NCBI RefSeq assembly: GCF_006345805.1 | Contig: NC_043003.1 | Span: 17,236,001-17,300,000, forward strand | DNA length: 64,000 nucleotides | Direction of reading: 5' to 3' | Origin: Octopus sinensis | Lineage: Eukaryota | Part shown: in pieces, positions 29,607 to 61,629 of the stretch | Numbering within the stretch: position 1 is the stretch's first letter | Layout of the letters: each line of letters starts with the position of its first letter | The notes under the pieces: generated by a model | Told to the model about the DNA's origin: nothing | The model's database searches: none | The model's input: only the letters and a program-made list of their open reading frames with translations | Translations under genes and position numbers: made by a program

Positions 29607-29807
29607 GTAAGCAAATCATTTAACTAAGAAAAAGAAAATAAAACAAACCAAAAGCCCTATTTATTGTTAAAGTGCAAGGTTATTCTATGGAGATAAAATC
29701 CATTGATTTAACCCAACCTTCTGCCTCAGTATATGTTGTAGGGGCCCCACTGTTGATATTGAATATAATAGCCTGCATAGAATTTTGACTGACAATTCTA
29801 ATAGTTT

Positions 29808-30222
29808 TGTAGTAAGAAGCTTGCTTCCCAACCATATGGTTCTGGGTTCAGTCCCACTGCATGGCACCTTGGGCAAGTGTGTTCTACTTAGCCTTGGGGT
29901 GACCAAAGCCTTGTGAGTGGATTTGGTAGACAGAAACTGAAAGAAGCCCATTACATATATCTATATCTATATGTGCGTGTGTGTATGTGTGTGTGATTGT
30001 GTATGTGTATGTTTGTGTGTCTGTGTTTGTACCTCCACCATCACTTAACAACCGATGTTGGTGTGTTTATGTTCCTGTAACTAGCAGTTCGGCAAAAGAG
30101 ACTGATAGAGTAAGTATATGGTTTACAAAGAATAAGTCCTGGGGTCGATTTGTTCGACTAAAGGCAGTGCTCCAGCAAGGCCACAGTCAAATGGCTGAAA
30201 CAGGTAAAAAGAGTAAAAGAGT
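29808..30222 (+). mobile_element. tRNA-derived SINE, family A, ending about 60 nt upstream of exon L
   Basis: Matches 62428-62888. Confidence 0.8.
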
Positions 30223-30281
30223 ACGTTACATTTGAAGTTCTTGTATATGGCATTCTAAAATATGTCATCTATTTATTACAG

Positions 30282-30654
30282 AGGACGAGAAGAAGAAGCA
30301 GAAGGAAGAAGAGATGCAACGAAAGGAAGAGGAGAGAAAGAAGCAAGAGGAAAGAGACAAATTAGAGATGGAAGAGAAAGAAAAGAAAAAGAAGAAGATG
30401 ACAAGAAAAAGGAGGAGGAGAAAAAGAAATTGGAATTGAAAAAGCAAGAAGAGGAAAAGAAGAAGGCAGAAGAGGATAAAAAGAAGAAGGAGGTTGATGA
30501 CAAGAAGAAGAAAGAGGATGAGGAGAAAAAGAAGAAAGAGGATGAGGAGAAAAAGAAGGAAGAGGAAGAGAAAAAGAAGGAAGAGGAAGACAAAAAGAAA
30601 AAGGAAGACGAAGAGAAAAAGAAGAAAGAGGAAGAAGAGAAAAAGAAGAAAGAA
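30282..30654 (+). CDS. unc-22: Twitchin exon L, about 125-aa Lys/Glu-rich low-complexity segment; 1-nt frameshift near 30381-30390 as written
   Basis: Acceptor atttattacag, donor gtatgt. The 5' part reads EDEKKKQKEEEMQRKEEERKKQEERDKLEMEEKEKK in the frame set by exon K. The 3' part reads EEDDKKKEEEKKK... in the frame of ORF 30262..30687. Confidence 0.8.
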
Positions 30655-30739
30655 GTATGTAAATTTGTTAATTATTTACATTTGTAAAGGCATGTGCATA
30701 TACTCACACATATATACACATCTACACAAATGAGTATAT

Positions 30740-30773
<34 letters not shown>

Positions 30774-30803
30774 TGTATGTATATGTATGTGTGTGTAAGT
30801 GCA

Positions 30804-30844
<41 letters not shown>

Positions 30845-32010
30845 TAGAGAAAAAAACACTCTTATGTAATTAAAACAATGATAGGCATAAAACATAAATG
30901 AAAAAATAAAATATATGATAAAACATTTATCTAAATCATAAAAAGTACATAATAATAAATAAACAGTATGTAATAAGTTAAAAGACCACACATGTTTCAT
31001 GGCTATAACTTCAATTCGAATTACAATCAAATTTAACTTATATACCTTTTTTTTTATTTTTATGTACTTTTTGTGATCTAGATAAATGTTTTATCGTATA
31101 TCTTATTTTTTCTATATGATATGGTTTATGTCTATCATTGTTTGAATTACATAATAGTGGTTTTTCGCTAATTTATATATATTATTTATTTATATTGTGA
31201 GATTTGATTTAATACTAAATTGAATTTTTCCCTGTAAGTTTGGAGTTATACTCCCTAATATTATTATTATTATAATATATGCTTTTGGTGCAAATGGTTT
31301 TTAATTACGGTGCCATGATGTACAATCCTGTAACTAACAGTAATGGTATTTTTTTATATAAGCTTAAAGCTTATGGTGATCACCATGCAATGACTAAGGG
31401 AAATAGTCTAAAAAAAGAGGCATATAAAAGTAACACACACTTGGTCACGTTAACAAAGGGGTGTGAGTTCGACTCTCATGAGGATAGGAAAGCCTTCTTT
31501 TTTCTGTTGAGGGCTTATATGCCCCTATATTAGACCATTTTCCTTAATCACTGCATGGTAATCACCATAAGCTTTAAGCTTATATAAAAAAACACCATTA
31601 TATATATATATATATATATATAGTAATCCCTCATCATTTTGTGGTTCACCTGCCATGTACTCAGTCAAGGAAATATTGTATATATATATATATGTCATTG
31701 TTCAGTTTTATATCTATGTATGTACGTATGTATGTGTGTATGTATGTATGTATATGAATATGCATATATGTATGTATGTATGTATATATGTATGTATGTG
31801 TGTGTGTGTATATATATATTATGTATGTTTGTATGTATGTATATTTGTACCTTTACATCTTATTAATGATGATTGCTTTAAGACAACACAATTGTGTAAT
31901 GTCAGTTTTGTATATCATTTTCTCTTTGAGCTTGCTTTGAAAGCTTATATTAGTGTTTATAAATTTTATGCTCCAATCTAATGTCAGTTCATCTTTTTAC
32001 TAATTTCCAG

Positions 32011-32026
32011 AAAGCTGCTCCCAAGG
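32011..32026 (+). CDS. unc-22: 16-nt microexon AAAGCTGCTCCCAAGG (KAAPK)
   Basis: Acceptor ctttttactaatttccag (with a ctaat branch-like motif), donor gtaagt; phase 0 to 1, joining exon L to exon N. Confidence 0.82.
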
Positions 32027-32454
32027 GTAAGTAAACCTAATTATTTCTAAGCAAGTACTTAAATTCAAATAGGGTTTTTACATATTAAAAGAAAATTATC
32101 ATAATTTTTGGAAAACATGTCAGTTCATTTAAAATGTTTGCATCCTTCAACACATATAGTTCCATAAACAAAATACATTTGAGCAACAACTTAAAATTAA
32201 ATCATAATTAATATTATTTAATACACTCTCATTATGGAATACTGTGTAAAATTCCAGCTGTTGTCTGATGATATTTTTATATTAATTAAACTTCTTACAT
32301 AAATACAAGCTAATTCCATTTTCAGTTTTATGGGGATTATTTTTTCTTTAAAATCATACATATTGTTGTAGAAAGGGAGAAAAAAGACTGACAACAATAA
32401 TTTACATTTACCTACAGTAGAAGCAGAGATCGACTACACAGAAATAATCAACTA

Positions 32455-32968
32455 CCGTAAATCCTCGAGTATAGTCTGCCCTTGAGTATAATACGCAGGG
32501 GATTTTTAAGGGGCTGTACCTCTGAAAAACCTAAACCTTGTGTATAATACGCACCCCTCCTCTAACTTGAGTCAAGGAGGTCTATATAACGTCCTTGGTT
32601 TGTAAAAATGTATACGGTAACGTCCTTTATTATTATTGTATATATAACATAATGCAAACGTGTAGCTTTTTTGTGCATTTTGTTTGCAGAAAATAAAAAG
32701 AAATAACAGTAATAACGTTTAATAAATGTTGCTTACTGCAAGTTATGGATGATTCTTTTATGACTTCATTGCTTTCAGGCTTAGCTTAAGGTATTTTCGT
32801 GCCTGACATCACAAAATGTGTCTGAATAAACATTGCCGGACAACAAATAGAGATTCAGACATTGCTTAGAAAATATTTTTCATTTTTAACCTCGTATATA
32901 GTACGCACAAGAGGTTTTGACCTTTAAATTTTGGAGAAAAAATGCAGATTATACTTGAGGATTTACGG
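32455..32968. mobile_element. pogo/Tigger-like (Tc1-mariner superfamily) MITE
   Basis: TA on both sides; TIRs CCGTAAATCCTCGAGTATA / TATACTTGAGGATTTACGG. Confidence 0.8.
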
Positions 32969-33755
32969 TAATCATTTCAAATACTTGCATATATTAATTC
33001 CAGTGTGTCTGGCAGGATAATATGAATTTTATGCAGATACTGGTTCACAGAATACATATAACTGATTTCCAACCGACTTTTTTTTTATTGCTTTCATTCC
33101 CTGATTTTATTATTTCTTGTTATGTTTGTGCTACTATCAACAGACAACAAGTTAAGAAAATTTGCTTTAAATTTTATCAGCTATTCACATACCTGCATTT
33201 CATGTTAGACACAGCAGCAGAAATATTGGAATGAGACAAGTGGGCACAGCTGGTTGGATACTGATGATTTGGCATGGTTAACTGGACATTGAGCCTGTTT
33301 TGGCAACAGTACTTTTTGGCACTAGAGGCAAACATACACACACATGTGCGCACATGCATGCAGAAATATACGCATACAGATAGAAAGAGTGAGAAAGACA
33401 TTATTGTTTATTAAAACAACTTCCCTCTCCTTGTACACAGTGAAATATACTCACCTACATAAACAAAGAGACAGAAAAGAGAGAAGGGAAGAGAGAGAAA
33501 GGGAGAGAAAGAAAGGGTGAAAGAATGAGAGAAACATTAAACTGAGAAATAAAAGGCATCAAAATGCCTGATGTTAAGTCTGCATCAAATCAGCAATGTC
33601 CAAAACAGCTGTACCAAAACATCTCATACATGCTCAAGCAGATATATATATATATATATATATATAAACATCTAATATAGGATACAATTTTTCGAAAAAA
33701 ATTTTATCAATGGCCAGCATTTAAAAAAATACCATTAATGGTTAAATTTATATAC

Positions 33756-34041
33756 AACTTATAAACAAGGGCAAAAGAAAAAAATTCTAATGCCAAATAT
33801 GCTGAAAATAGACAAATTGTCAATAACCATATAATTTATCACTATAAACATGTGTCTCGAAGTAAGCCAACACAAATTTCTAAAATATTCCTAAAAAATT
33901 CCAACAGAATTTTTTAGAAATTTCTGCCAGCCTACTTTGAGACACGTGTTTATAGTGATAAATTATATGGTTATTGACTATTTGTCTATTTTCGGCATAT
34001 TTGGCATTAGAATTTTTTTCTTTTGCCCTTGTTTATAAGTT
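33756..34041. repeat. Fold-back with about 110-bp inverted arms between two (TA)n tracts
   Basis: 33756-33867 is the reverse complement of 33930-34041 with few mismatches. Confidence 0.85.
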
Positions 34042-35230
34042 TTTTATATATATATATATATATTCCATGTTAAGTAACTAAAATTTCTTATATGTCTCTT
34101 GATAGTTGCAATGACAATCCTCTTCATATGACTCCATTATATTTTTAATATAATTTGAAAATGCATGCATCTGTTTATTATTTGATTATTTATTTAAAAA
34201 TTTTTTTTTCTTTTGCGCTAATCAAACTCTGAAAGTACCCCACTTCATATACTTCAAAGGAAAATTCCTTGAAAAAAATTTCAGAATTGTACTTTCAAAG
34301 TTGCCAGCGGTGTTTGTTCGCGCATTCCCACCCATCCTAATTATTCCATGCTTTTTTGTTATATTTATGTCAAATCCATGTGTCATTGTGTATAAGTTTT
34401 TGTTCAGTTAGTTGTAACTACAGCTTTGAGTTTTTTTAAGACTTAATTATTTCTTGAATTCAGTTATTTAATGTTAATAGAATTGCACCACAGGAACTAA
34501 CTTTAAGTTTTGTTAATCAATGGTTGAATATATAATTTTTTCCTTTTTAGAATTATTCATTTCACCCTTTTGGTTACCCGTTACGTTGATAAAAAGTATA
34601 TTCATTCATTTTAATTAATGATAAGTGTTGGGTTGCAAATAATCTATCTTCAAATACTATTATTGTATTTCGTCACATGTAGATATTTTCTTAACAAACC
34701 AAATAACTTCATTATTTATATTTTATGTTTCTTTATTTAAAGCTAAAAGCATTTCCAAAAGTCAGGTGTTTTATTTCTAAGACCAGTTTTACACTTCAGC
34801 AATAAGAAAAATATTATCTGAAAACATTAACCACAAAGATATGAAATGATTAAAATTAAAGATTCGGCAAATTAATTATTTCTCAGCTACTTCTAGGTGG
34901 TTAGACTATAAGGCTGTTATCTTTCTCAGAATATTTTCAGTAAATTTAAGGTTCTGAAAAACACAATTATAAGTGACACAATATGTAGAAGTGGTGAGAA
35001 ATACTAATATTGTAGTAATTTATATAAATTTCTTTCAAGGGAAGAGGTATAATCAATTCAGTTGAATACTCACTGATAAAAGATTTAAGCTTGGAGTGTA
35101 GAGCACGGAAACTAAATGCAATGCATTTTGCCCAGCACCTCACCAATTCTGCTAACCCTTGTAGTACAAAATCTCACAGTTATATAAGTGTAGAGTTTTA
35201 CTATATATTTCTTAATCTTTACTCTTTCTT

Positions 35231-35716
35231 AATCATCATCATCATTTAACATCGATTTTCCATGCTAGCATGGGTTGGACGGTTCAACCAGGGTCTGGGA
35301 AGCCAGGAGGCTGTGCCAGGCTCCAGTCTGATCTGGCAGTGTTTCTACAGCTGGATGCCCTTCCTAATGCCAACCACTCTGTGAGTGTAGTGGATGCTTA
35401 TTACATGCTACCGGCACAGGGGCCAGAGGAGGCTGGCAAGCAGCCATGATTGGTTGGTGCTTTTTACATGTCACCGACACAGATGCCAGTCAGGTGGTGT
35501 TGGCATCAGCCACGTTCGGATGGTGCTTTTTACGTTCCACCGGCACGGGAATCATAACTACAATTTCCATTTGATGTTTATTTTGATGTTGATGTTGACG
35601 TAGTTGACCCAGTAGGTCTCCTCAAGCACAGCGGGTCACTCTACGATCCAAGGTTAGCACAGCAAGCTATCCTGCGAGCCATGAAGTCACTTCAATTGTC
35701 AGGTATTTGCAGTCAC
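35231..35716 (-). mobile_element. 3' UTR and tail remnant of the same RTE-like family as 5345-6335
   Basis: Shares catcatcatttaac...gcatgggttggac...ctacagctggatgcccttcctaatgccaacc with 5350-5760. Confidence 0.7.
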
Positions 35717-36209
35717 AGCATATATCTTTCTTAATCTTTACTCTTAATGAGAAGTGCATGTTGCTTTGAGGAAAGCAAAGAATAAATTAGATATAAAGTT
35801 TAGTGAATTGAGTGAAAACTGAGCCATAACTGAATTTTGTTTCTTTTAGGGAAAACAATTTTATGATTATACTTTGAATGGATTATTTAAAAATATATTG
35901 ACTTATTAAAAAAAAATCATCATCTGCATGGTGAACAGTGAGAATCCAAATGATGATTTGCAAATTTATTCTTAACACATTCTGGCAGCTTCAATTGTAA
36001 ATATGCAAATTGCTGTTGGGTTATGTCACAGGAAAACAATTTCCCCTTTGTGTTGAATGTATTTTCATGACATACTCAATTCATTAATGCAAGGGATTCT
36101 GTGACACTCAATGTTTCAACATCATTGTGCCTCATCAGCCCAAGGTACATCAAACTAATAAATCTTGTTTATAATTTCCGCAAGCAGTTTGCTACTGCAT
36201 GCTGTATAT

Positions 36210-36524
36210 GAAGGCACATCACTCAGTGGTTAGAGCGTTGAGCTTACAATTGTGAGGCTGTGAGTTCAAATCCCAGACCAGGCTGCGTGTTGTGTTCTTG
36301 AGCAAGACACTTTATTTCCCATTGCTGTAGAAATGAGTTGCAATGTCACAGGTGCCGAGCTGTATCGGTCTTTGCCTTTCCCTTGGATAACACTGGTAGC
36401 ATGGAGAGGGGAGGCCGGTATGCATGGGTGACTGCTGGTCTTCCATAAACAACCTTGCCCGGACTTGTGCTTGGGAGGGTAACATTTTAGGTGCAATCCC
36501 ATGATCAATCATAACCGAAGGTGA
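36210..36524 (+). mobile_element. tRNA-derived SINE, family C
   Basis: Matches 16788-17124. Confidence 0.8.
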
Positions 36525-37451
36525 TCTCAGCATCAGAAGCTGTATATGCCAACCAATAATAGTTCCTCAGATACACAGTGTACCACCAGAATGAAGATGA
36601 TGACCTGCATATTCATTTTGAATTAATTCTGGCAGATTTGAACATGAATTTACTAATCACTGCCATCAAGTGAACTACAATACTCTCCTAATCACTGTTA
36701 CGTTTTATCACTTCATATTTCAAAAATAACCAAGTAGGTTAAAATTTCAAGCAGTGTAAAGAAAGAGAAATCTTAGTAAAGTTTTCATGGAATCTGACAA
36801 TTTCTAGAATACTTATGACATTATGTATTTCTTAAACACTCTGAAGTATTAGTCCAAGCATGTATAAAGAGAGATATGCATACATGTTTCAATCCATTAG
36901 TTCATATATTTGATAACTTCTTTTGTGGAGGTCAGTACTCTTAGTTTAGACAATTTAGTTTAGTCCAACTCTTCTGTTAGCCACCCATTATTTGACTTCT
37001 AACCACTAACAGTTCTGAGTTCTACTTCACATAGTTTGCACTCTACAATTTTAAAGAAGCCTCTCAAATATTTCCTGATTTACAACTCTTATGAGTGATT
37101 CCATTCGATTCTTCTAGTTCCTGACACACTTATACAATTTCTATGCATGCATCATACAATATCACTACACAAGATATTACTTAGATCATTTAAAAACTAA
37201 GAACATTAAATCAAGAAATACTTGCCAAATATTGCAGAGTTCTTTAAATTAAAGAATGTTCTTTAACTTCACTCCTTATTTCATTACTTTGGGATTTATT
37301 TCCAAGAATAATCAGTAATATTTGTAATATACTTTCTGCGGTATATGAAACATTCTCTGTTGCAATGTTTCTGACTTGCAGTTATCAGAAATAACACTTC
37401 CATATAACGTTTTCTAACACAGTTCTATATTTAAGAGATGAGGAATTATGT

Positions 37452-37841
37452 ACATTATTTACATTATTTACAACTGACGGATATTTGTCCTCATCTTGTT
37501 TGTTGTTAACACAACGTTTCGGCTGATATACCCTCCAGCCTTCATCAGGTTCTCATTTCTAAGGTATTTTTCAATGTTGTAAGAGCACGGGCTACTAACC
37601 CCAAGATTCCAAGTTCGATTCCAGACAGTAACCTGAATAATAATTATAATAATAATAATGATGATGATGATGATGATGATAATAACAACGACATCGAAAA
37701 ATACCTTAGGAATGAGAATCCAGGTTCGAAATTTCCCCAAGACACCTGAAGAAGGCTGGCGGGTATATCAGCCAAAATGTTGTGGTAACAACAAACAAGA
37801 TGAGGGCAAATATCCATCAATTGTAAATAATGTAAATAATG
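37452..37841. mobile_element. Inverted-repeat element carrying hammerhead-like motifs in both arms (Penelope-like terminal repeat remnant)
   Basis: Arms 37452-37579 and 37686-37841. The minus strand of the left arm reads CTGATGA-AGGCTG...CAGCC-GAAACGTT-GTGTT. Confidence 0.55.
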
Positions 37842-38124
37842 AATGTTTTCTAAGTTTCAGACATTGGACTGAGACCTAGTTTTCAAAAGGTTTATCAGCT
37901 AACTCATATTGACCGCAGTAGTTCATCTGATAACTGTGGGCTAAATATTAAAAAGTGATGGTTAGCATTATCTGCACTGAGGTTTATCTCCATATTTATG
38001 AATTCTTTGCATCTAAAATTATTATTGTTGTATATACATACCGACACATATACATATAGATATGTAAGAGTGCATAGCACTTACAATCACTAGATTATGT
38101 TTCAGTTTCTTGAGCAAAACACCT

Positions 38125-38655
38125 GATGTGTGGTACACTGTGTACCTGTTCAGATATGTGGTACACTATGTACCTTTTCAGATGTGTGGTACACTTTGTA
38201 CCTGTTCAGATGTGTGGTACACTATGTACCTGTTCAGATGTGCGGTACACTATGTACCTGTTCAGATGTGTGGTATGCTAAGTACCCGTTCAGATGTGTG
38301 ATACACTATGTATCTGTTCAGATGTGTGGTACACTAAGTACCTGCTCAGATGTGAGGTACACTATGTACCTGTTCAGATGTGTGGTACACTATGTACCTG
38401 TTCAGATGTGTGGTACACTATTTACCTGTTCAGATGTGTGGTACACTATTTACCTGTTCAGATGTGTGGTACACTATGTACCTGTTCAGATGCGTGGTAC
38501 ACTATGTACCTGTTCAGATGTGTGGTACACTATGTACCTGTACAGATGTGTGGTACACTATGTACCTGTTCAGATGTGTGGTACACTATGTACCTGTTCA
38601 GCTGTGTGGTACACTATGTACCCGTTCAAATATTATGTGTGGTACACTATGTACA
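38125..38655 (+). repeat. Minisatellite, about 19 x 28 bp (tgttcagatgtgtggtacactatgtacc)
   Basis: Contiguous units with point variants and no unique spacers. Confidence 0.95.
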
Positions 38656-38816
38656 TGTTCACATAATGTCAATTTGATGGAGTGAGGGACCTAATGTATA
38701 ACACAAACATTAGATCGCTATAAACAAATCATTTATGCTGGTTGTTCAGCAAGAAATTGCAGGAGTGAATTGATTGAATTCCAAGAGATTATCACATCTA
38801 TCTATCTATCTTTCTT

Positions 38817-38895
<79 letters not shown>

Positions 38896-39040
38896 TTGTG
38901 TGTGAGTACTTCAAGAACATTTTAATTTTCAACCCATTTGAAAACTACAATTGCTAGCTTTTAATATCCATATGTTTGTGTTTGAAACTAACTTCCTGTG
39001 TTTTAGTTTATCCAATTTTTTATTCCACATTTTCCTTTAG

Positions 39041-39046
39041 GAGAAA
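39041..39046 (+). CDS. Possible 6-nt symmetric microexon GAGAAA
   Basis: Strong pyrimidine tract (tttttattccacattttcctttag) but weak donor gtaata; phase 1 to 1, so not required by the frame. Confidence 0.25.
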
Positions 39047-39411
39047 GTAATATTAATAATTTTAAAATCCCAGCAACTAATAATAACCACATTTGACAAC
39101 TTGAATTAAATAGTGCTGGAAGTTTGTTATTTTTCATTTACAAAAAAGCAAACATTTAATTAAGAATATTAACTGCAAAATACCAACTACATACTTACAT
39201 TTCTGCTTGATAAATTAATGGCTGCATGTTAAAATACTGAAGTAGCTTTATTAATTATATTATGTACAAAGAAATATATATAAATAAGAAAAATCTCAGT
39301 GAATTCAATGTATCGTTACTCTGTGTGTAGCACGAGCTCTGCAGTTATAATTTGCTATATTATAAGAACGATTTACATTTAAGATATTTAGTGTCTAATC
39401 GTTGATTGGCT

Positions 39412-39443
<32 letters not shown>

Positions 39444-41076: not shown

Positions 41077-41453
41077 GCTTCTACACACACATGTATGTAT
41101 GCATATATGTAATCATGTATGTATATAAATTTGTATAATAATAAATATCTAGAACCATATGTAAATCTAATTTTCAAAATGAAAATCAGTATATTCAGTG
41201 AACAGGAATGTTTGAGAAAAAAGATTAACTTTTATAATAAATTAGAACATTGAGAACTATATCACACGGATTACTGTTAAAGATATTTAGAATTAACATA
41301 GTTATTAGCTTTTGTCCTTAAATTGAAAATCAATATCCTAGCAATTTAAAACTGGGTATAATTGATTTTGTCTTTGTCTAAAATATATGTTGTCAAAGCA
41401 TGATAGTTCTGTGTTGTTCAACAAGTCTGTATTTGCCCTGCTTGCTATCACAG

Positions 41454-41672
41454 CTGCCGAACCAGAGCCGAAAGAAGAAGCGCCCGCGCCCGCGCCACAG
41501 CCGCCTCTTCCCACTGTCAATGAGCCCATCGCTGATGAGGATGCAGGTAAAACACCAAAATCCCGATCTCCCTCACCCCAATTCCAAGCTCCAAACAAAG
41601 ATATGCCAAAAAAGGCTAAGTCTCCTCAGCCATATCGGAAACAACCTACAACTATTTTTGAGTACGAAGAAG
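41454..41672 (+). CDS. unc-22: Twitchin exon N, Pro/Glu-rich PEVK-like (AAEPEPKEEAPAPAPQPPLPTVNEPIADEDA), with a proximal donor after 41546 or a distal donor after 41672
   Basis: Acceptor cttgctatcacag; GC-rich island in an AT-rich intron; both donors (gtaaaa, gtaggt) are phase 1; lies within ORF 41387..41680. Confidence 0.8.
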
Positions 41673-41863
41673 GTAGGTAATGCGCATGCAACAATGAAAC
41701 CAACCTCTACTGATATTCCGCATGGGCATTTGTAATGGCGGCATAGGATCTGCTAAAGAAGATTACAACTAAAGGTTGGCATTTTGTTCATCAAAAGGGT
41801 ATTTCCAACTAGAAAAGGCAGTTTATTGAGCATTATTGCTCATATATATATATAAATATATAA

Positions 41864-41917
<54 letters not shown>

Positions 41918-42024
41918 ATACATTCGTAAGCAGTAATCTATATGTATGTGTATGTATGTGTGTATGAATGTGCATGTGTATGAGTGAGTGTGTGAGTGAA
42001 GTGAGTGTAGGTATGTTCATGCAT

Positions 42025-42055
<31 letters not shown>

Positions 42056-42219: not shown

Positions 42220-42252
<33 letters not shown>

Positions 42253-44523: not shown

Positions 44524-46899
44524 CTATCTATAAATGTTCCAAAATCTACTCAGCTTTGGTTTTTTATCTCATTACAAAAAATTTTTTATATATATATCAG
44601 ATAATGCTTGATGCATACTACATTCTATTATAGTATTATTGAAGAAAAATGCATAAAAATAAATGATGCAAAGACTGTTATTATATGAACATTTTATTTA
44701 ATATTACAATATTATATGAAAATTTTATATCAAGATATAATGTCTAGCAAAAGTAACTTAGCTATACAACAAAAAAAGTGTTTAATAATTGGAGAGGTAA
44801 TTTAAAAATGATTCCTAGAACTTAGCCAAATTAACCTAAAATATAGTAGTGAACTATTTTGTCAATGAATTAAAGAAAAAAATTAGAGATAGAGTAATTC
44901 ATGTCTCCTAAATTTTGTTACTAATATCAAATCTCAACAAAACTTTATCTTCATGTAAATTAGCTTCGTTATTTGAAAATAAGAATGATTTCTTTAATGA
45001 ATTCAGGGCCATACAATTAGGGGTAGTGGTATGGTTACTTATTTCAACTGCAATACTTCACAGGTACTGGTGCTTATTTTATTGACCCCAGAAGGATGGA
45101 AAGTGAGGATAACCTTGGCAGGATTCAAAATCAGACCTTAAAGAGGCGTAACTACATACTATCTGCTTCTTTATCAATTCTGTCAATGCATCGTCGTTTA
45201 ATAATAACAATAATAATAATAATAAAAGCATTAATGACAATAATAATAAAGTAATAACAGCAATAATAATTTCTTGCATTCTATGATTATAATAATGGTA
45301 GCATTAGTAATAATAATAAGCTTCTCTAAATTAAAATAATGGCAATACATAATGATAATAATAATAATAATAATAATAGTAATAATAATAATAATAATAA
45401 ATGCATTAATAACAATAATAATAAAATAATAACAGCAAAAATAATTTTTTGTATTCTATGATAATAATAATGGTAGTATTAGTAATAATAATAAGCTTCT
45501 CTAAATTAAAATAACAGCAATACATAATAATGATAATAACAATAGTAATAATAATAATAATGGTAATAATAATAATAATGATAATAATAATAATCTTTCT
45601 AATATAGGCACAAGGCCTGAAATTTGGGGGCAGTGGGGTAGTCGATTATTAGTACTTATTTCATCGATCCTGAAAGGATGAAAGACAAAGTTGACCTCGG
45701 CAGAATTTGAACTCGGAATGTAAGGATGGACAAAATGCTGCAAAGCATTTTTCTTTGCATGCTAATGATTCTACCAAAAATGGAATCATGTAAACACTTA
45801 AAGGGGAAAACAGGTATATGTAAATTGTAAAAAATCTTTGTTATGAGAGTCAAATAATCACCAGCAACAATCACTGTAAAGTAAATAATGAAATATCTCA
45901 AAATTACCAGAAAAAAATGTGTGATTAACATCAATTAGAAGAGTAGTACTATATAAAAAAAACAGTGGTGAAGGCTCCATCGAGTTGTTGACCTGCTAGA
46001 AATAGAAGGTGCATTTCCTTTAAATTAAACCAATGCCTTAAGAAGGAAGGGTCTCATTGGATCATGTAGTTTGAGATATGCCTTATCTGAGACAAATGGG
46101 ATGACAATGGCTAGAATACCTTCGATTATTCTACATCTGTTTAGTCAGGGCTAAATTATGAGTTTCATAACAACAGTAAATCTTGTTGGAATTTTGAGTA
46201 CTAAATATGCCAAAAAAAAGAAGAATGTGAAACAAGATATCTAAATTAATTGTGAAAATATCCAAATTAATTTGTGAAAATAATTTACAAAATTACTTTG
46301 ATTATTAATATGGCATAACTATCAAGAAATTCTAGACACAGTGCTGGAATAGAAGAAAGAATTCTTCTTAAAAACTACTCATCTACAGAACTTATAGTTA
46401 TGGGGTTAGTAGACTGGCACATTGGGCTGGGCTGTACTAGTAAGGAAAAATAAATGGTTCAAACTAAGAAACACAAACACCAACCCTTAAATTAATAATG
46501 AAATATTCCTTATATATATAATATATTGAAATTAGATATTATAGATTGTTATCATGGCAATACTGATTAGAAACTTATGTGGAAGGATAGTAGAGATTGA
46601 TAAGGAAAGAAAGTGCATGAGGAAGAGTTGAATAAGAGAGAAATAATGTTTGAAATCTGAAACAGAAAATTATGAAAATGTGAAAACAGACTGATTTCTC
46701 TGCCTTTAAACAATACTGAAGAATAGAATATTCTGGTCCATCGAGGGCTATTCAGAAATACCTTTGATAATACTCATAAGTAGTGATCATAATTGTACTA
46801 CTTTTTTTTAAAATGCCAACGCATGCAATATTTTTTTTTCACAATTAAAATACAACACCAGCTACATTTCTTTAAGATTTTATCTGGCTCCTAATTACA

Positions 46900-50844: not shown

Positions 50845-50885
<41 letters not shown>

Positions 50886-52758
50886 CAAAAATTCAAACAA
50901 GTATTCCTTTTATCGTTAATAAATATATTAATGAAAATGCAAAAGTAGAGAAACAAAAAAATTGATTACATAAATAATACATTAATAGCAGGAATCTATA
51001 ATAATAATAATCAGTTGGATAAAATGCACAAAGAAAAGGAAACCACATATGAATGTACATAAGCATAAATGCATGTTCATTGAGATAGCATAATTATTGC
51101 ATATATCTCATTTACACGGAATAGTTTCTGCAGATAATTAAGTCTCTAAAATGTAGATTACATGCTCCGATCAATATCTTCCAAAAAAAAAATCATGCAT
51201 TGTTATTACTGTTTGCAATGAATGCTGGTCATAAAGATATAGTTTTGATACGTTCCTGTCAGTTATCTGTTATCTATTCGTCATTCACATTGCATCATGT
51301 TCGTAGTTTCATGATCGTTCATGCCATAATTACATATATAAGAGCACTGTTGTAGTTTTTGTTATAACTAATTGTTATTTGTGCAACTGTCATGAGTAAT
51401 TTTTGTATAATGTCTTCTGTATTCTTGTTTTATGTTATATGTTCATGTAATCTTAACAAATATCTTAAACGATGTTCAGTTAAATTTATGTTTTATATAA
51501 ATTATAGTTAAACTCAATCATAAAGGCTAAAGTCCTCAAATTATATGTTAATTATTTTAAGTAATAATTATGAAGTACTTTTAAATAGGAATCAATTACA
51601 AATAGATTAATTTTGTAATACAGACAGTAACATTATTTATTTCTTGTGAAATCTGCAATTTATTTCCCGCACTGAAACACTTAGAATAAATATAAAAAAT
51701 CATTTTCAAAATTAATTTCATTTGAGAAAGAATCTTTAAAGATATAGCTGCTGAACTATAAGTAAAACTTTTGCTTTGCTTTTGTTTAATTGATTTGAAA
51801 TAGCAAGAAATACATATAGCCTATATAATTTTATAAAAAGCCAGAATGTAAGTTGGACATTAATTTTGGCTTTTAGAAGTTGATTTGAATCTTTGGGGAA
51901 TGAAGACTACTTATGTTATTGCACTGAAGAATCTGAAACCATTATTTAGCAAAATGTACACAAAATTAATTAATTCATTTGGATATTTTAATAATGTAAA
52001 TGTTAAATAACTGACTGTATGGGTTAAATCTAAAGTCTTTTGGAAAGATGTCAGTATTGATATATATAAGATATGACAATGAAACTTGAAAATGATGATT
52101 ATTAAGCTATCAATAGAACTTATATGTATGTAAATTATAAATTCAATATGTTCCTTCCTTTCGTAAGCCTCACTTATGAAAGTAAGTTATATTAGTTGTA
52201 GTTTGAATTCCGAAAAAAAAAAAAAAAAAAAACCAAAAGCTGTTAACTTAAAATGTTATGGGAAAAACCATCGACATATCTTTAAATTACTAATTAATGC
52301 TACATGTCCAATAACATTGAATTTAAAATGCATAGGTTAAGTTTTAAGACTTCGCCATCATGAAATGTATAATGGTTAGTGGTTGTTAAAGATTTCACGA
52401 GATATAAAAAAAAAACTATTTCATTGGATCAGCCTCTTTTGAGATGAGTTACTGTCTGAAAGATTTAAAGTCAATTTGTGATTGTTACTGTAAAAGAGTA
52501 CTTCGTAAACATTTATGTCATTTATCATTATCAAAAAGAATAAGCATTTATACAGATTGGTGAAAATATATTTTAATCCAACCATTTATATTTCAATTCA
52601 TCTAAATATAATGGTTCCATGAAGCCCTATATATATATATACATTAATTCTGTAAGGTCCAATTTTCATTTAAAATTTGTTGCATGCAAGCAAGCGGTAT
52701 GCGTACCATCAATCATACTTTATTTTGAGTATCTGCCTTTGCTATGTTCGCAATGAAG

Positions 52759-52941
52759 AGGATGTAGATGGAATCAACATGTATCCACCTTCATTGAGAG
52801 GAATGCCAGACACTGACGGCTATGAAGCCGATGAGGATGACACAGTGATCATACCAAATGGTCACAATATTTGTCCAGAAATTACAACTGAAGACTATGA
52901 TGGACTTTCTGATGACGACTTCTTCAATGAAGACGATGAAG
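52759..52941 (+). CDS. unc-22: Acidic candidate exon (EDVDGINMYPPSLRGMPDTDGYEADEDDTVIIPNGHNICPEITTEDYDGLSDDDFFNEDDE); 5' boundary uncertain (52759 or 52768)
   Basis: Coding-like Asp/Glu-rich open frame in ORF 52677..52997 ending at GAAG/gtattt in phase 1. Both candidate acceptors are phase 1 but atypical. Confidence 0.55.
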
Positions 52942-54354
52942 GTATTTTGGCAGGATGCATCAATCAACAAATTAGTAAAGGTCAAACAATAACCTAAAGG
53001 GAATATTATTTTAAATGCTTTGTAAGATGGAGAGAGAGAAATTGAGGGAATGTGTGCATGAAAGAGAAAGTATGAGAGACACAGAAAGATGGAGACAGTG
53101 AAGCAAACACAGAGATTACTCTGTCTTATCAGAGGATAGGTCATTACATATGTACAATGTTTTTGGAAACAGAGCACACAGATGCCAGATCATTTTTCTA
53201 AAATCCTATCCTTTCTAGATTTCTTTCACTCCATCTCAAAGCAGTTATTCCTTGGGATTGTTGTACCTTAAATATACTGAATCAAGGAACAAAATTATTT
53301 TTTCAAAATTTAATATTTACTATAATAAATTTAGAATTAAAAAAATTTGGCAAAACTTGGGACATCAATTATAAATCAGGTATCTTAAATTAAGTTATCT
53401 GATTATTAATTTTTGTTAATTTTTGTTAATTTCACTATGCTGAGAAAATGGAATGTAACATGTTCCTTTGATTGAGTATATTTGAAATGATATATAAATA
53501 TTAGTGATGTATCATATGTAATTTTACTTTTACACGTTTGCTTCTGGTTAATCCTTACACATTTCATCTACTGGGAATATTCTTTATACTGTGCACTCTT
53601 AGACACTATTAAGCTATATCAATACATTTTTTATTAGAATTACGGTGTGTCTAGGGTGTACATGGTTAGTTATACCCACAAAGTATCAAAGGATTAATCA
53701 TTAGCTTCAACTTCCTGACAACTGTTTCTTTCTCTTTGGTTTTATCTTATATTTATTTCAGTTTTCCTAAAACAGATTTCAAGATGACATTACAATAATG
53801 CAACAGTCGTAATGCTTATTCCGCATTCCATATGCTGTATGCTCCCACAGCCCTGATTATTTGCTGCTTAGATATTGCGCTAAATATTGGAGCAAGCCCA
53901 AACAATTGCTCAGATTCAACAGTTTATTTGCGCTCTTGGCTGAATCTTTGTATATGCGCTGGGAAAAAAAAATTTCTCCAACAATTCCCCTCCTCTGTTT
54001 TTTTTTTCTCTTTCAATTTTGCTAATTATATTTTCATTTCAGAAATAAATATATTGCACTAACTGGTAATGTGATGATAAACACTTTGATGTGAAAATAT
54101 ATTTAATTCAATTTATTAGGAAAAATGAATAATTAATTATATTTGCAATATTAATCAATAATATTTTCAGTATGCTCAAAGTCTCTTGAAGTAAATTATA
54201 TCTCGAAATCATGTAAAGAATTTGAACCTAAATATTTTATAAAATTTAGTATTCATCAGTTGAAGTAAAAATTATATAAATGCTATCTGATTTTATTCAT
54301 TTTACAATGAACATTTATTAACATTTATCTTTTTTACTTTACAATCAACAATAG

Positions 54355-54365
54355 GAAAAGAGAGG
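54355..54365 (+). CDS. unc-22: 11-nt microexon GAAAAGAGAGG (G-K-E-R)
   Basis: Pyrimidine tract tttatcttttttacttt, acceptor caacaatag, donor gtaagt; gives the phase 1 to 0 conversion needed to enter exon O. Confidence 0.72.
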
Positions 54366-55672
54366 GTAAGTTGCTTCACTTTCTTCATTGACAAATTATA
54401 ATATTACTATATATATATATATATATATATCATTGTTTCTAATTCTCTCTAAAGGAGACTAGATATAGTTTTATATTTAGAACTGTATATTTAGGACAGC
54501 TGGAAGAATGGTGTTTTACTTGTATAAAATCATCACACATTTTCACAATTATATTTAATGCAAATTTTTTTAGCTATCAAAACAACGAAGAAATAAGGAA
54601 TTCCAGTAGTTCAATACAGAGTCAGAAAACAAGTGTTTACTTATCAAAAATATTTTTAAAACTTGCAAATGATCATAGTTGAATTATTGGATTTAGCCTC
54701 TTCTATAAATTTTCTTTTTATTTAATATAGATATGATATATTGATGTTATCATAAATCGCAGACAATAGCAATTTTATTGGTAGTTTAGTTTATACCAAC
54801 AAAAAAATATTTGGGCATTTCGACAAAAAAAAATTTGACATTTTCACCGATATGAAAGTCACAGATGCATACATGTTGTTAATTATTTACAAACATGCAC
54901 ACTATACTAACACTTTTAAAGATATACATAACTATCTGGAAGTAAGTGCTAGATAATTCAAAATATTCATATATTTCCTATTAATATACTTATTTCATTT
55001 ATTTGGCATCACTTCATCCCTATCACTGACAACATGAAAAGACATTAAAAACGATAAGTTTTTTTCATATATTTTGATGGCTTCTGTTATTATTTAAGAA
55101 AGTATGAGAGTTTTCAATTTCTTCTCAGTTATCAACCATATAATCTTAGATAAAATTTTTCTCTCATCTTTCATTTCTTTAATGTTTGTGGCACATTGCC
55201 TATCTCTTTGGTTTAATCATCACTGCATAATCTCTTATTTTTTAGTGGCGTCTGTCATTGATTACATTAAACTGATAATATACCTTGTGTTGACTGAGCA
55301 TGAATGGATAAGTAGGTATTTAAAGAGTGGTGCTTTCTAACTACCCACTAGATCTCACTTAGAAATCCACTCTCCATTTTCACAATGTAAAATGTTTTCT
55401 CGCCTAAGTTTCGAAAATTTTCGTCCACTTTATGCAAATATTATATATTTCTATATGTTTTTAAAATTATATCTTCATGGAGTTAACTTTGGATTCCTTA
55501 ATGACAATACAACCTTCGTATAATTACGGTATCTTTGGCCTAACGAATAGCTAGCTGAGTATCCCTCATTGAGTAATTATTACATCAGAGGATCTGCTAG
55601 CTAGGAAACATATGTAGCCTGGATTTTACCTCTTTCACTCCCTCAATTTGGATACACACACACACAAACACA

Positions 55673-55708
<36 letters not shown>

Positions 55709-56628
55709 CATACATTCACACACAAACATAAATGCTTACATACATAATACATACATGCGTATGCTTGTGTATATATATATGTGTGTGTGTGCATGTGTGT
55801 ATGTAACCAATAAAATACAAAAGAAAAAGAAATATATATATATATATATATATTCTATCAGAATTTTTAAACAAAGAAACAAGGAGTTTGTTGTTTTAAA
55901 AGATATAGAATTGCACCTCAGAACATAATGTTATCTCATAGGAAAACTTATTCTTTACTTACTTTGCTAACGGATCTTACATTTTCTTTGTTTTACATTT
56001 ACAAAGCATTCTTATTGTGGTTACACAAACAACGAAGGAAGTTATCAGGGTGTTACCGTCAGCATTTAAACAATGTATAAAAATTCATTCAGACAACCTG
56101 AATATATGTTAGTACACTGTACACTTAACCAATTAAATTCTTTAAAATTTACACAACAGAAAACATATATCTCCCATTTCCACGATGGTTCCTAATAATC
56201 ATCCTGCCATGGATACTAGGTATATGGATGATACATATCTGTATTTTCGCCGAAAGACATTTATTCGCTACAGTCTAGGCCCATATGAGGTAAATTTTAC
56301 TTTATTGAGCAGTTAATTTCGAAACATCTAAAGGTATTTCTTGTATTTTGTTAAGTTACCAATAATAACATTTATTTTATTATTTCATTTTACTTCTATT
56401 ATCACATGACAATCACCATAATTTTTGAGAACCAATAAATGCTAAAATTTAATTGATAGATATTTAGATTAGGTATTGATAATGTTTTTATTGCTATATT
56501 TTTTAACTATTCAACTCCCAATTTTTGCTACAGTTTTGAAAATATCTATTCTTAATGTAATTGGGGAAATAAGATTTTCCTTAAAATTGATTTATATAAT
56601 TTTTTATATTAATTAGTTCACAAATCGC

Positions 56629-56663
<35 letters not shown>

Positions 56664-57585
56664 ATATACATACATTCACACACAAACATAAATGCTTACA
56701 TACATAATACATACATGCGTATGCTTGTGTATATATATATGTGTGTGTGTGCATGTGTGTATGTAACCAATAAAATACAAAAGAAAAAGAAATATATATA
56801 TATATATATATATTCTATCAGAATTTTTAAACAAAGAAACAAGGAGTTTGTTGTTTTAAAAGATATAGAATTGCACCTCAGAACATAATGTTATCTCATA
56901 GGAAAACTTATTCTTTACTTACTTTGCTAACGGATCTTACATTTTCTTTGTTTTACATTTACAAAGCATTCTTATTGTGGTTACACAAACAACGAAGGAA
57001 GTTATCAGGGTGTTACCGTCAGCATTTAAACAATGTATAAAAATTCATTCAGACAACCTGAATATATGTTAGTACACTGTACACTTAACCAATTAAATTC
57101 TTTAAAATTTACACAACAGAAAACATATATCTTCCATTTCCACGATGGTTCCTAATAATCATCCTGCCATGGATACTAGGTATATGGATGATACATATCT
57201 GTATTTTCGCCGAAAGACATTTATTCGCTACAGTCTAGGCCCATATGAGGTAAATTTTACTTTATTGAGCAGTTAATTTCGAAACATCTAAAGGTATTTC
57301 TTGTATTTTGTTAAGTTACCAATAATAACATTTATTTTATTATTTCATTTTACTTCTATTATCACATGACAATCACCATAATTTTTGAGAACCAATAAAT
57401 GCTAAAATTTAATTGATAGATATTTAGATTAGGTATTGATAATGTTTTTATTGCTATATTTTTTAACTATTCAACTCCCAATTTTTGCTACAGTTTTGAA
57501 AATATCTATTCTTAATGTAATTGGGGAAATAAGATTTTCCTTAAAATTGATTTATATAATTTTTTATATTAATTAGTTCACAAAT

Positions 57586-57588
<3 letters not shown>
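55709..57588 (+). repeat. Tandem duplication with 960-bp period, bounded by (TA)n tracts
   Basis: Lines at offset 960 match; the only difference I saw is 56173 C versus 57133 T. Confidence 0.95.
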
Positions 57589-57620
<32 letters not shown>

Positions 57621-57957
57621 AAAATCATATACATTTATATCAATTATATTGCATTATATAACAAATTATATAGTATTATAATGTTATTATGTGGCATTAC
57701 TATAATGTAGTACTGTAATACTATATAGTATCACCATATTATATTTTTGTATGGTATATTGATATAAGTGTTAAACTTAACATTATTTTTGGAAATAAAA
57801 TTGTTGATTGCACTCAGCTACCTGACAAGAGGCACTGTGTACATACTGACACACACACACACACACACATGCATATATATATATGTGTGTGTGATATGTA
57901 TATGTTTATATAGTGTATAAATATATGTGTGTAAATGTGTATCTCTAAATATGTATA

Positions 57958-58011
<54 letters not shown>

Positions 58012-60209
58012 CATCATCATCATTTAACATCCAAAAGCACATTGGTGGATGATCAAATTCTTTTAAAAGTTGAATGTTGATAGTACAAAACAAATGGTTT
58101 CATGCAAAAAATGTACAAATATTTGATCATAGTTTAAATAATAATACAGTCACTCTAACAAGAATGGCTGAACTTCCAATATTATTCAAACTATGGTTGA
58201 ATAATTGCAAACTTTATCAAGTTTGTAACATGACAGTTGGAAGAAAAAAGAAGTGCACCAGCTCTAGAATATATAAGTACATGTATGTCTGTTGGCATGT
58301 AAATATGTATATAAATAGGTATGTGGTGAAGCAATTAGCTGAACCCTAATTATAATTATGCTTATGATTATAAAATATAATTTTACCTATAAAGGTTATT
58401 TCAATGTACTGATCTACTTGGTGAAATTATTAAGTAATTGATTGATTAATTAATTAATTTGATTAATAAATTTTACTCTTTATTATTAATTTAAAATATA
58501 TAAATAGGGTGTAAGAATTTATTACTTGTAAACATCTTTGTATTTTCTATAGAAATTATGTGCCCAAGGTCATTTAATTATTGGGACGTAATCTTTTCTT
58601 TATAAAATTTATTCATCTCCAATGACTCAAAGAGTTAGTATAAACCGCAGTTTTGATCTGACTTTATTATGATATGCAGAGAAGAAATAAAATTATGCCT
58701 GGTAATCACATCAGTCTTTTAAAAGTGCTTTAGATTTTGTGAGCTGCTCAGGCTTTGGAGATATTTGCATTTTAGAAATATAAAAATATCTAAAATTCCT
58801 GAATTCTCTTCCATAAATCCAATATATATATATATATATATATAAATGTGATGGTGCAATTTTCTAATGCTGCTAACCATACTTCTAAAAATCATAAGAA
58901 TCAGTAATTTTGATATTTTGTAATTAAGGAAAGCTGAGTAAGATATAAATTATTTAACAAACAAAATTCACGTAGGAAAACCACCCTCAATTACATTTAA
59001 AGACGATAGCTAAAAGTTTGGTTGGCTTCATAAACAGCCAGCCAAATAAGATACAATCCACCATCTAACTTGAAACTTGTGAACTTTAGTATGCTATAAA
59101 AAAAATTGTGATTTAATTATTGTTTTGAAAGTAAGTCTTTAATTAATAGCACCTTTTTAAAGGTAGATTTATCTTATTATTGCCCACCAAAAATTATATA
59201 AAAGGCAACATACCTTGGAATTATTCCTTTGGTAATTACCATTAGAGCAAAAGCGTTGGATCCCATCAAAACATCCAGCCCATGTCAACATGGGAAGTGG
59301 AACTAAAGATGATGATGACAATGATATTGATAACGATGATTACTAATTTCCATACTTTTGTAAAAGAAACTATTAAAATACCATTTATAATAGAATAAAT
59401 GTTCCGCAGCAGCAGAAGTATCCATGTTTTATTTATACTTTATGAAGCATCTATCAGCTCTTCCTTAGAATTTGTAAGTTTCAGTAAATAGAAGAAAATT
59501 AAGATTCACATTTTCAAATACATACTATCTATACTTTGTTACATATTTTTCTCATTACATAAACTTTGTTTATGATCGTATATCAGGACAATGATCCTCA
59601 AGCAAACAACTTAATTTTCTATTATCTCATCATGTACTGTCAAGACGTTTGAAAGGTCTTCTTTTGATGTAAAGATTAGAATGATACAAAGCATTGAAAT
59701 AATATTTGTGCTAGTTGATATCATCTTATTAATGCTACATAAGGAATACCATTTATTTTGGGTTGAAAATGTTATCAGTATTACAAGTGCTGATATCAAC
59801 TTAATGCTACATTCAATGCATAGTATGCAATTTTATATGCCAACAAATATATAATAGTAGAAATAATTGCTTTCATCTTGAAAAAGAGCTAAAATATAGC
59901 AGAGCATAGACATGGGTGGTTAAGTGCTGAAGCTTCATCCAATGAAATCACTTCTACAGGTTATTTTTTTTTATCAGAACATAGTATGTTAATGTATGCA
60001 AATGCAGTTGGAACATTTTTAGGAATTCCTTCACTTGTAGTCTTTGAATGAGAATAGTATTATAATATAATCAATTTTGAAATATAGATGCAAATATGAT
60101 ATCATCACCATCATCACCATTAAAAGCAGACGTTAAATGATGATGATGATGATGACATCATATTTGCATCTAGTTTTAATTAATTTTATCATCATCATCA
60201 TCATCATTT

Positions 60210-60465
60210 GTGGAGGCACGTGGCTTAGTGGTTAGGGTGTCAGCATCATAATCGTAAGATTGTGGTTTCGATTCCGCGACCGGGCAACACGTTGTGTTCT
60301 TGAGCAAAACACTTCATTTCACTTTGCTCCAGTCCACTCAGCTGGCAAAAATGAGTAACACTGTGATGGACGGGCGTCCGGTCCAGTTGGAGAACACATA
60401 CGCCGTAAAAACCAGGAAACCGGGCCCATGAGCCTGGTTAGGCTTTAAAAGGGCGCATTTATTTT
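60210..60465 (+). mobile_element. tRNA-derived SINE, family E
   Basis: Full-length match to the reverse complement of 3350-3607. Confidence 0.8.
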
Positions 60466-60697
60466 ATTTTTTATCATCCTCATTTAATGTCCGTTGTCTA
60501 TGCTGCAAGGGTTGGACAGTTTGACCAGGGTTGGAAAGCTGGAAGACTGCATCAGACTCCAGCTTCTCATATTTTGCAAATAATGTTGAAAAAATATCAC
60601 AATTTTTGTCTTCCATAACAAATTTACAAATATTCACTCGTAGTTTTGTAAAAGGATTATCTCAAAACACCTTTTTAAACATACAAAGACAGATATG

Positions 60698-60731
<34 letters not shown>

Positions 60732-60991
60732 TACATAGATGCATTCATGCATAATATATACTGCATACATATCTGTGGGTGCATATGCCTGCATGTGCAT
60801 ATATATAATTACATATCTACATACACACACACACACACACATATATATATATGCATACATATACAAACATATATATTAACTTTTACAATAATATTGAGTA
60901 ATCCTTCAGTTTTATGTTAAATTGTTCTTATATATAATTTGGCATATAAACATCTTGTGTGTGTGTATGTATGTATGTGCGTGTGTGCCTC

Positions 60992-61034
<43 letters not shown>

Positions 61035-61629
61035 GCATACACATATGTATGTGTTGTATATGTGTGTACATGTGTCTGTAACTTATAAAATAACTTATAA
61101 ATATATGATGTACACACACATACACACTTGACAGGTTTTCACGAAGATTTTGTCACCAAATTCCAATCATAATTTATTGTTAAACACTAGGTCATGGTAG
61201 GAGGTACTCAACCATAGTATGGTGAATTCATAAACATTTACATCTTGCTTTGTATAATAAGACAATATTGTGAAAATGTGTGATAGAAAATGTTTACAAG
61301 TGTCAATACATTCTTCAGCAATTATATGAAATATGAATAAAATTATTAAATTGAACTTGATCAATATATTGCTTTTATTATAACTGTATTTATATCTTTA
61401 AATCATTTAAAATGATTTAAAACAAAATAACATTTGATATTATTCCATACATACTTTCTTTGGGATTACAAGCAACATTTTATATAAAATATAAATATTG
61501 TATTTAATTAAAATATATATTTGTAGGTTCCTTTCATTTGCTGGCAGGGATAGAATATTTAATATATTTTGTAAATAACCAGAATTAAATTGCATTTCAT
61601 GTTTACTAATGAGATGATTCCTATTACAG

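Follow-up and report, generated by a model that had tools for sequence, protein, structure and literature searches.

Projectin, the arthropod orthologue of twitchin, contains a PEVK region (rich in Pro, Glu, Val and Lys) between two N-terminal tracts of immunoglobulin (Ig) domains, which is encoded by small exons, one of them 24 nt in length, that are spliced into forms of 34-624 amino acids with a content of PEVK residues between 42 and 100% (PMC3835035). Twitchin from Mytilus has a PEVK-like domain of small size and, between Ig7 and Ig8, the protein kinase A (PKA) site D1, whose phosphorylation releases catch (PMC12040844), and, as far as the account in a later article goes, it occurs in tissue-specific isoforms with or without D1, the D1 form being confined to catch muscle (Kusaka 2008, as cited in PMC6059360). 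In the I-band of vertebrate titin, it is the muscle-type-specific skipping of exons that sets passive stiffness (as summarised in PMC3835035), and twitchin-type proteins are located on the thick filament (PMC12040844). Here, we have analysed a locus from Octopus sinensis contained in a 64-kb stretch of contig NC_043003.1 (termed the window and numbered from its first letter), where about 32 kb of intron space separate two Ig-coding exons, K and O, of a related gene. We conclude with moderate confidence that this interval harbours at least four exons following K, named L, M, N and the acidic exon, which encode a modular non-Ig linker and may be spliced into variable springs of a titin-family muscle protein, a design that is already known from titin and projectin.

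The proposed modularity is manifested in the reading frame of the exons. Exon K (29363-29606, + strand), which contributes the latter half of the sixth I-set Ig domain in the window, is entered in phase 0 and has one base (G) left over at its donor (AAAG/gtaagc, 29606/29607), equivalent to phase 1. Of the segments that follow, N with 219 nt (or 93 nt in a putative short form), the acidic exon with 183 nt and the combination of L with the microexon M all have equal entry and exit phases. Since they enter and leave in phase 1, [L+M], N in either length and the acidic exon could each be skipped in frame. In these respects, an earlier sequence-only reading of the locus is borne out: the interval 29607-61629 it had singled out is exactly the intron space between K and O, as judged from the splice sites read in the sequence, the exit of K in phase 1 and the modular arrangement of the linker are found as described, and the exons add up to about 267 amino acids, close to the maximum of about 270 that it had proposed. 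Its underlying observation is largely right, impressively so in the call of the microexon, and its mechanical interpretation is plausible.

On the + strand of the window, 11 exons (A to K) encode six I-set Ig domains, with the Pfam I-set model recognizing exon C (E=3e-17) and exon K (E=3e-15) and with titin as the top match of known structure for the Ig exons. Exon A continues a coding exon located beyond the window, so that the true number of Ig domains upstream of the linker is at least six, and the position of the linker, formerly denoted as Ig6-Ig7, is after at least the sixth Ig domain. Both the tandem I-set domains and the unique PEVK-like sequence breaking the N-terminal Ig tract, here represented by L, M, N and the acidic exon, are characteristics of twitchin and projectin, and 'twitchin' appears to be a reasonable label for the gene, whose kinase and Fn3 repeats would lie outside the 64-kb window. 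No further genes or Pfam domains were found on either strand of the 32-kb interval, a search of Rfam recovered no families, and L, N and the acidic exon had no match in Pfam. At the junction between exons G and H, the phase is apparently 2 (23690-23700, donor TGC/gtaagt; 25693-25700, acceptor tggcag/C), with the other inter-Ig junctions being in phase 1, and exon H opens with a Lys/Asp-rich mini-linker (QQKDKDAEKDAEKDKEKK).

Homologous sequences were obtained from three sources. The most extensive belongs to a distant relative (termed the ENA species), whose exons share about 74% DNA identity with the window and which is represented by a 110-kb contig (ERZ21867824 ctg109939l); its overlapping sequences L001 and L003 were joined into 39.9 kb that stop 10 kb past N. 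A close relative is represented in Logan SRR11869384 and SRR11869390 (loci L004 and L005), and a third source, Logan ERR12921339 (locus L002), covers K only. In public protein collections, we found no annotated twitchin for the species and recovered genomic open reading frame (ORF) fragments from three other genomes: a protein search with exon K returned two genomic ORF fragments only, and one combining N, the acidic exon and O returned two ORFs of exon N only. Neither an exact match to the L and N ORFs of the window itself nor, in scans of JGI metagenomes, any relative of N was found. In the ENA species, K, L, M and N follow each other in the same order as in the window, with the ortholog of K showing 80% protein identity and substitutions that are distributed over the three codon positions as 11/9/45, in excess at the third position.

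Exon L, which is rich in Glu and Lys, starts at 30282 or 30284 and ends at 30654 on the + strand, where its donor (GAA/gtatgt, 30654/30655) is left in phase 0 under either frame. Its ortholog in the ENA species (L001 11624-11925) comprises 302 nt with a single open frame leading from phase 1 to phase 0. From the proximal acceptor in the window (ttacag/AG, start 30282), the frame matches this ortholog (EDEKKKQKEEEM...), and it is only in this frame that the first 34 codons correspond (EDEKKKQKEEEMQRKEEERKKQEE compared to EDEKKKKKEEEMKRKEEERRKNEE), with substitutions in this first part of 10/6/20 by codon position. From the distal AG of cagAG (start 30284), the exon is open throughout its 371 nt and the later part of L (LELKKQEEEKKK...) matches the ortholog only there. 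The use of the distal AG in the ENA species would lead to an immediate stop, so that the proximal AG is the ancestral site. In an alignment of the DNA, the window is one base short near 30397/30398 (GAAGAAG-ATGAC compared to GAAGAAGGATGAA in the ortholog), indicating that either a base was lost in the assembly or allele, or that L is damaged in this species; for annotation, the exon should be flagged as carrying a probable one-base error or a real frameshift. The frame previously assigned to the first ~38 codons of L, which requires the distal AG and mismatches the ortholog, relative to which the assembly lacks one base, is not supported.

Further downstream, the sequence of L (30397-30654) consists to 70% of Glu and Lys in repeated E4K4-type blocks and is predicted by AlphaFold2 to fold into one helix of 84 residues (2-85 of 86) with a predicted local distance difference test score (pLDDT) of 96.5. 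This segment most likely forms a single long α-helix, in line with the charged helix that had been postulated. ER/K single α-helix (SAH) domains, such as those of myosin VI and X and caldesmon, serve as stiff spacers and are unfolded by low forces. L resembles them in its Glu and Lys content, its E4K4-type blocks and an uninterrupted predicted helix lacking a hydrophobic seam, a likeness of composition and AlphaFold2 prediction to a class of domains that is not a homologous family. The exon (30287-30655) displays an internal periodicity of 24 and 45 nt and exceeds its ortholog by about 23 codons, so that the charged helix changes in length between species by gain or loss of repeats. Tandem donors downstream of L (30658/30659 in the window; GTAG/GT in the ENA species), which would provide an exit in phase 1, were rejected as weak sites.

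Since L exits in phase 0 and N is read in phase 1, a segment with a length of 1 modulo 3 is required between the two exons. For its identification, we have applied a stringent scan that demands a pyrimidine tract of at least 70%, followed by AG, and a GT donor agreeing in at least 5 of 7 consensus positions, with no intervening stop. In the intron between L and N of the window, the sole candidate is the microexon M (32011-32026, + strand), which comprises 16 nt (tactaatttccag/AAAGCTGCTCCCAAGG/gtaagt), encodes KAAPK plus G and leads from phase 0 to phase 1. The sole candidate in the ENA species (L001 12943-12961, ctttgcag/AAAGCCCCACCACCCAAAG/gtgagt) has 19 nt, encodes KAPPPK plus G and causes the same shift from phase 0 to phase 1. 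It follows L at a distance of 1017 nt, compared to 1356 nt in the window. Candidates of this stringency have a background of about 1 per 10 kb, and the chance of a peptide composed entirely of Lys, Ala and Pro is roughly estimated from base composition as 1e-5 or less per candidate. By plain edit distance, the M pair did not stand out from relaxed candidates, and BLAST of the intron between L and N revealed repeats only and no conserved islands. Based on its being the only stringent candidate in each species, on the shared phase shift and on peptides made up of Lys, Ala and Pro alone in AT-rich introns, we regard M as a real exon that would return the frame from phase 0 to phase 1. The combined length of L and M is a multiple of three in both species, amounting to 371+16 nt for the window and to 302+19 nt for the ENA species, and the unit retains phase 1 as had been claimed. 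An apparent match just upstream of M (J 15472-15504) was rejected since it is located in a transposon-like repeat. Such a repeat is found in several copies and in both orientations at 37479-37843 of the window and at 2635-2749, 8756-9074 and 15467-15921 of L001.

Exon N (41454-41672, + strand) extends over 219 nt from phase 1 to phase 1 (acceptor ctatcacag/CT, donor GAAG/gtaggt) and is PEVK-like in its Pro/Glu/Lys-rich composition with Ser-Pro motifs, which probably results in a disordered segment. The joint content of Pro, Glu, Val and Lys amounts to 48% in the long and 55% in the short form of N, as anticipated from its description as PEVK-like, to 60% in M and to 71% in L, which is devoid of Pro, with N, M and L all showing the enrichment of a PEVK segment, and to 23% in the acidic exon. 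At the protein level, N is 93% identical to the close relative (P0003) and 73-75% identical to the ENA species (P0004). The exon is open in two frames in both species (41382-41732, with 117 codons in the phase-0 frame), and substitutions between the window and the ENA species are distributed as 9/10/27 in the Pro-rich phase-1 frame (chi-square p=0.0013). Reading N in phase 0, whereby L could be joined to it directly, was rejected, as 27 of 46 substitutions would then hit second codon positions, and the pattern of substitutions shows that selection acts on the Pro-rich phase-1 frame only. Taken over the linker, the exons K, L and N are conserved and under purifying selection. The sequence-only reading had offered N in a short and a long version. 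The long version is supported by these substitutions. The short one (41454-41546, 93 nt, phase 1 to 1, inner donor GCAG/gtaaaa at 41546/41547) is possible and not supported: its inner donor retains the GT in all three species, which the coding sequence for Ala-Gly-Lys/Asn would equally explain; the ENA species has a strong inner donor in N that is absent from the window. In the intron between M and N, a 28-nt minisatellite (GATGTGTGGTACACTATGTACCTGTTCA, 38125-38661), repeated 19 times with a match of 90%, gives rise to long open frames that are spurious.

Regulated alternative exons, often muscle-specific ones, typically show conserved intron flanks combined with GCAUG motifs, and both are observed around N. 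The upstream flank (41395-41453, + strand; alignment z=10.1 against shuffles) carries GCATG at 41398, and the downstream flank (41673-41772, + strand; z=21.8), which agrees with the ENA species in 62 of 88 bases, carries GCATG at 41684 and 41720. Among K, L, M and N, conservation of this strength is unique to N, with the flanks of the other three showing z-values between -1.2 and 2.7. The three GCATG cores near N are kept in three species and correspond, in the form of the GCAUG core and not of the full UGCAUG, to the conserved (U)GCAUG close to an exon that characterizes Rbfox-type regulation at the sequence level. The flanks of N are the best evidence for regulated splicing at the locus, of an indirect kind. 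The two sites of the downstream flank (41683-41690 and 41719-41726) are complementary to each other (GCGCAUGC with GCAUGGGC or GCAUGCGC) and are paired as GCAUGC in a consensus RNA fold, which has no covariation to support it at a depth of only three sequences; they could form a hairpin instead of, or besides, binding a protein.

The properties of N also bear on a different explanation, in which the exons K-L-M-N-acidic-O' are always included to form a fixed linker of about 265 residues and where the symmetry of phases reflects the gene architecture of the family. Such a constitutive linker would agree with the phase-1 boundaries that are frequent between domains elsewhere in the gene (B to C, C to D, E to F and I to J), with the conservation of L, M and N as a set and with the limited PEVK splicing of lepidopteran projectin (PMC3835035). 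However, highly conserved GCAUG-bearing flanks that are restricted to N would be unusual for constitutive exons, and the orthologous regions of projectin and titin, reportedly also of Mytilus twitchin, are alternatively spliced. We consider a constitutive linker as unlikely.

The acidic exon (52759-52941, + strand), with 183 nt from phase 1 to phase 1 (acceptor aatgaag/AG, donor GAAG/gtattt), agrees with its earlier description as an acidic segment that preserves phase 1. It contains 34% Asp and Glu with a net charge of -20 and is predicted by AlphaFold2 to be disordered, with a pLDDT of 56 and no secondary structure. Within AT-rich DNA, the exon is part of a stretch that remains open for 107 codons. 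Its identification is founded on an acidic composition that starts and stops at usable splice sites and on a phase that fits its neighbours. It is probably an exon, and the least secure of the four. Inner donors at 52763 and 52844 (exit phase 0) were rejected because they are weak and would split a uniformly acidic segment.

The linker is closed by exon O (61630-61723, + strand, 94 nt, phase 0 to 1), which encodes its end (DEGRRASKAQKGARPQ) and also the beginning of the following Ig domain, and where only one frame yields the Ig A-strand (DEGRRASKAQKGARPQGPTFSKPAENKVVVEG). If entered at the proximal acceptor (ttacag/GATG, 61629/61630), this frame (DEGRRASK...GPTFSKPAENKVVVEG) is in phase 0, as previously assumed. 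If entered at a second acceptor located 7 nt inside (gatgaag/GA, 61636/61637), O is shortened to 87 nt with phase 1 on both sides and restores the identical Gly-Arg-Arg-Ala-Ser, so that its start in phase 0 is one of two possible readings. With the acceptor at 61637, every block between K and O is of the type phase 1 to phase 1 and K can be joined to O directly, whereas with 61630 only L fits. A precedent is provided by exon D, where following the perfect phase-1 donor of exon C (14583), the proximal TAG acceptor (20055) leads to a stop and the frame (AGKAPHFTQKP) is obtained only from the distal AAG at 20059/20060, 5 nt past the TAG (window 20052-20060); exon A (6501-6509) shows the same layout (cag-ACAAG/). 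For annotation, D and O may need the distal AAG, and predictors choosing the first AG would misannotate exons D and A. No counterpart of O was found by tblastn and tblastx in the ENA contig up to 10 kb after N.

Because 61637 accepts phase 1, an adaptor between the acidic exon and O is probably unnecessary. The sequence-only reading had instead assumed that O always starts in phase 0 and that the chain is closed by an 11-nt microexon, with an optional exon of 6 nt. This scheme draws on ttacag/G at 61630 as a textbook acceptor, on M as a true microexon of the locus and on the only 11-nt candidate flanked by AG and GT in the interval from the acidic exon to O (GCCCATATGAG), which is found at 56279 and 57239. 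The signals of this candidate are weak, and it occurs in each copy of a 960-bp tandem duplication, as one of 37 comparably weak candidates in a relaxed scan. The stringent scan between the acidic exon and O contained no 11-nt candidate and, as its only hit, one of 23 nt in the 960-bp duplicate, and for the 6-nt exon a single candidate (29673-29678), 66 nt after the donor of K, does not exceed the level expected by chance. We regard this scheme as very improbable. The 960-bp unit is present twice at 55693-57612 with 99.9% identity and a single mismatch (56173 compared to 57133), reflecting either a very recent duplication or an artefact of assembly.

The two acceptors of O also open up a different logic, in which L, leaving in phase 0, continues only via M or to O at 61630, exons exiting in phase 1 (K, M, N or the acidic exon) must use 61637, and mismatched combinations are removed by nonsense-mediated decay (NMD), so that the frame would select the combinations of exons. 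L exits in phase 0 in both species, both acceptors enter one Ig frame and rebuild Gly-Arg-Arg-Ala-Ser, and there is precedent for a tandem acceptor in exon D. Yet the basis of this proposal is the arithmetic of frames, and the conservation of M right after L suggests that L normally precedes M. We consider two such frame-matched routes to be rather improbable.

O also contains the sequence RRAS, a PKA-type site (61639-61650) located 10 residues before the Ig A-strand motif GPTF. At sequence level, this corresponds to the R-R-x-S in an N-terminal inter-Ig linker that distinguishes a D1-type site, and the linker may be equivalent to that of D1 in Mytilus.

Several observations weigh against a modular, alternatively spliced linker. 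All matches in protein collections are genomic ORFs that run on into introns, and none is derived from a transcript. At exon O, the proximal CAG at 61629 looks stronger than the distal AAG, and if it were used, O would start in phase 0 and only L would be in frame. The motif GCATG is over-represented in the window (72 seen compared to about 30 expected); being common, its occurrence near N counts solely for its conservation. AlphaFold2 is prone to draw helices for any E/K-rich sequence. The proximal frame of L meets a TGA at 30437-30439, and the orthologous frame is unreadable without a stop as assembled. For the acidic exon, the search of 1.8 billion representative proteins recovered a single homolog (P0005), which is 96% identical, from a close relative and itself a genomic ORF, and tblastn and tblastx did not find the exon in the 10 kb following N in the ENA contig, a miss that says little since introns of this species are about 1.6 times longer.

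Latter findings would suit a cassette that is partly decayed or spurious, where L is dying through a real frameshift, or where the acidic segment is a chance ORF that is restricted to the lineage and not spliced in, or both. Besides the one-base discrepancy and the in-frame TGA in L and the single close homolog of the acidic ORF, this view is favoured by the distal AG of cagAG, which is a poor acceptor according to general knowledge of splice sites, and by a rough calculation from base composition, according to which about 0.3 stretches of 107 open codons are expected per strand of 32 kb of this DNA. Conversely, the downstream two-thirds of L form a clean E/K helix in the frame matching the ortholog (LELKK...), none of the Ig exons is disrupted, the boundaries of the acidic composition coincide exactly with a usable acceptor and donor, with phases (1 to 1) that fit the neighbours, and in comparison to P0005 there are 2 changes in 54 residues of the exon and 3 in 17-18 residues of read-through. 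We judge a partly decayed or spurious cassette to be unlikely.

Returning to the modular linker as our preferred explanation, we envisage that unique sequence would interrupt the N-terminal Ig tract of a twitchin- or projectin-like giant muscle protein and that K would be followed by four exons, with L contributing a helix, M returning the frame, N adding a PEVK-like coil and the acidic exon a disordered segment. O would then supply RRAS as a kinase site shortly ahead of the next Ig domain, with the frame into O closed by the distal AAG acceptor at 61637 and no need for an 11-nt exon. The inclusion of N at least might be decided by muscle-specific splicing factors that act via its conserved GCAUG-bearing flanks, and the outcome would be linkers of 0 to about 265 residues with differing stiffness and charge, as found in projectin and titin. 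Both combinatorial splicing and its tuning in tissues, as put forward in the sequence-only reading, are to be taken as inferences.

In comparison with NTCS-1 of projectin, the locus shares a unique sequence enriched in Pro, Glu, Val and Lys that is encoded by many small exons and interrupts the N-terminal Ig tandem. It differs in comprising four or five exons, with one encoding a pure Glu/Lys helix and one being strongly acidic. With twitchin of Mytilus galloprovincialis, it has in common the PEVK-like domain and, in the RRAS of O, a site just before an Ig domain, whereas the potential linker is about three times longer and composed of three chemically distinct modules. Titin spans half a sarcomere and contains more than 100 PEVK exons, compared to the handful of exons found here, and the likeness consists in Pro-rich and acidic Glu-rich modules, each in symmetric exons.

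Further repeats are found in introns of the window, namely scattered SINE-like copies, such as the one at 45001-45140 and a tandem pair of 184 nt (63161-63527).

The locus offers concrete handles for experiments in the frame-restoring microexon of 16 or 19 nt and in the GCAUG-bearing flanks of N. If the logic of two frame-matched routes were true, a microexon and a tandem acceptor would together switch the frame and so couple splice choices that are far apart. If the cassettes differ between muscles, they would provide a simple genetic dial for the passive stiffness of muscle in a soft-bodied animal, and catch-like holding of muscle might be affected too, by way of a stiff charged helix, a coil rich in proline, an acidic segment and a kinase site. 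With only four modules, the linker would be a small set suited to single-molecule mechanics, and the rule known from titin and projectin, where the length of a spring is determined by the choice of exons, would be extended to another phylum.

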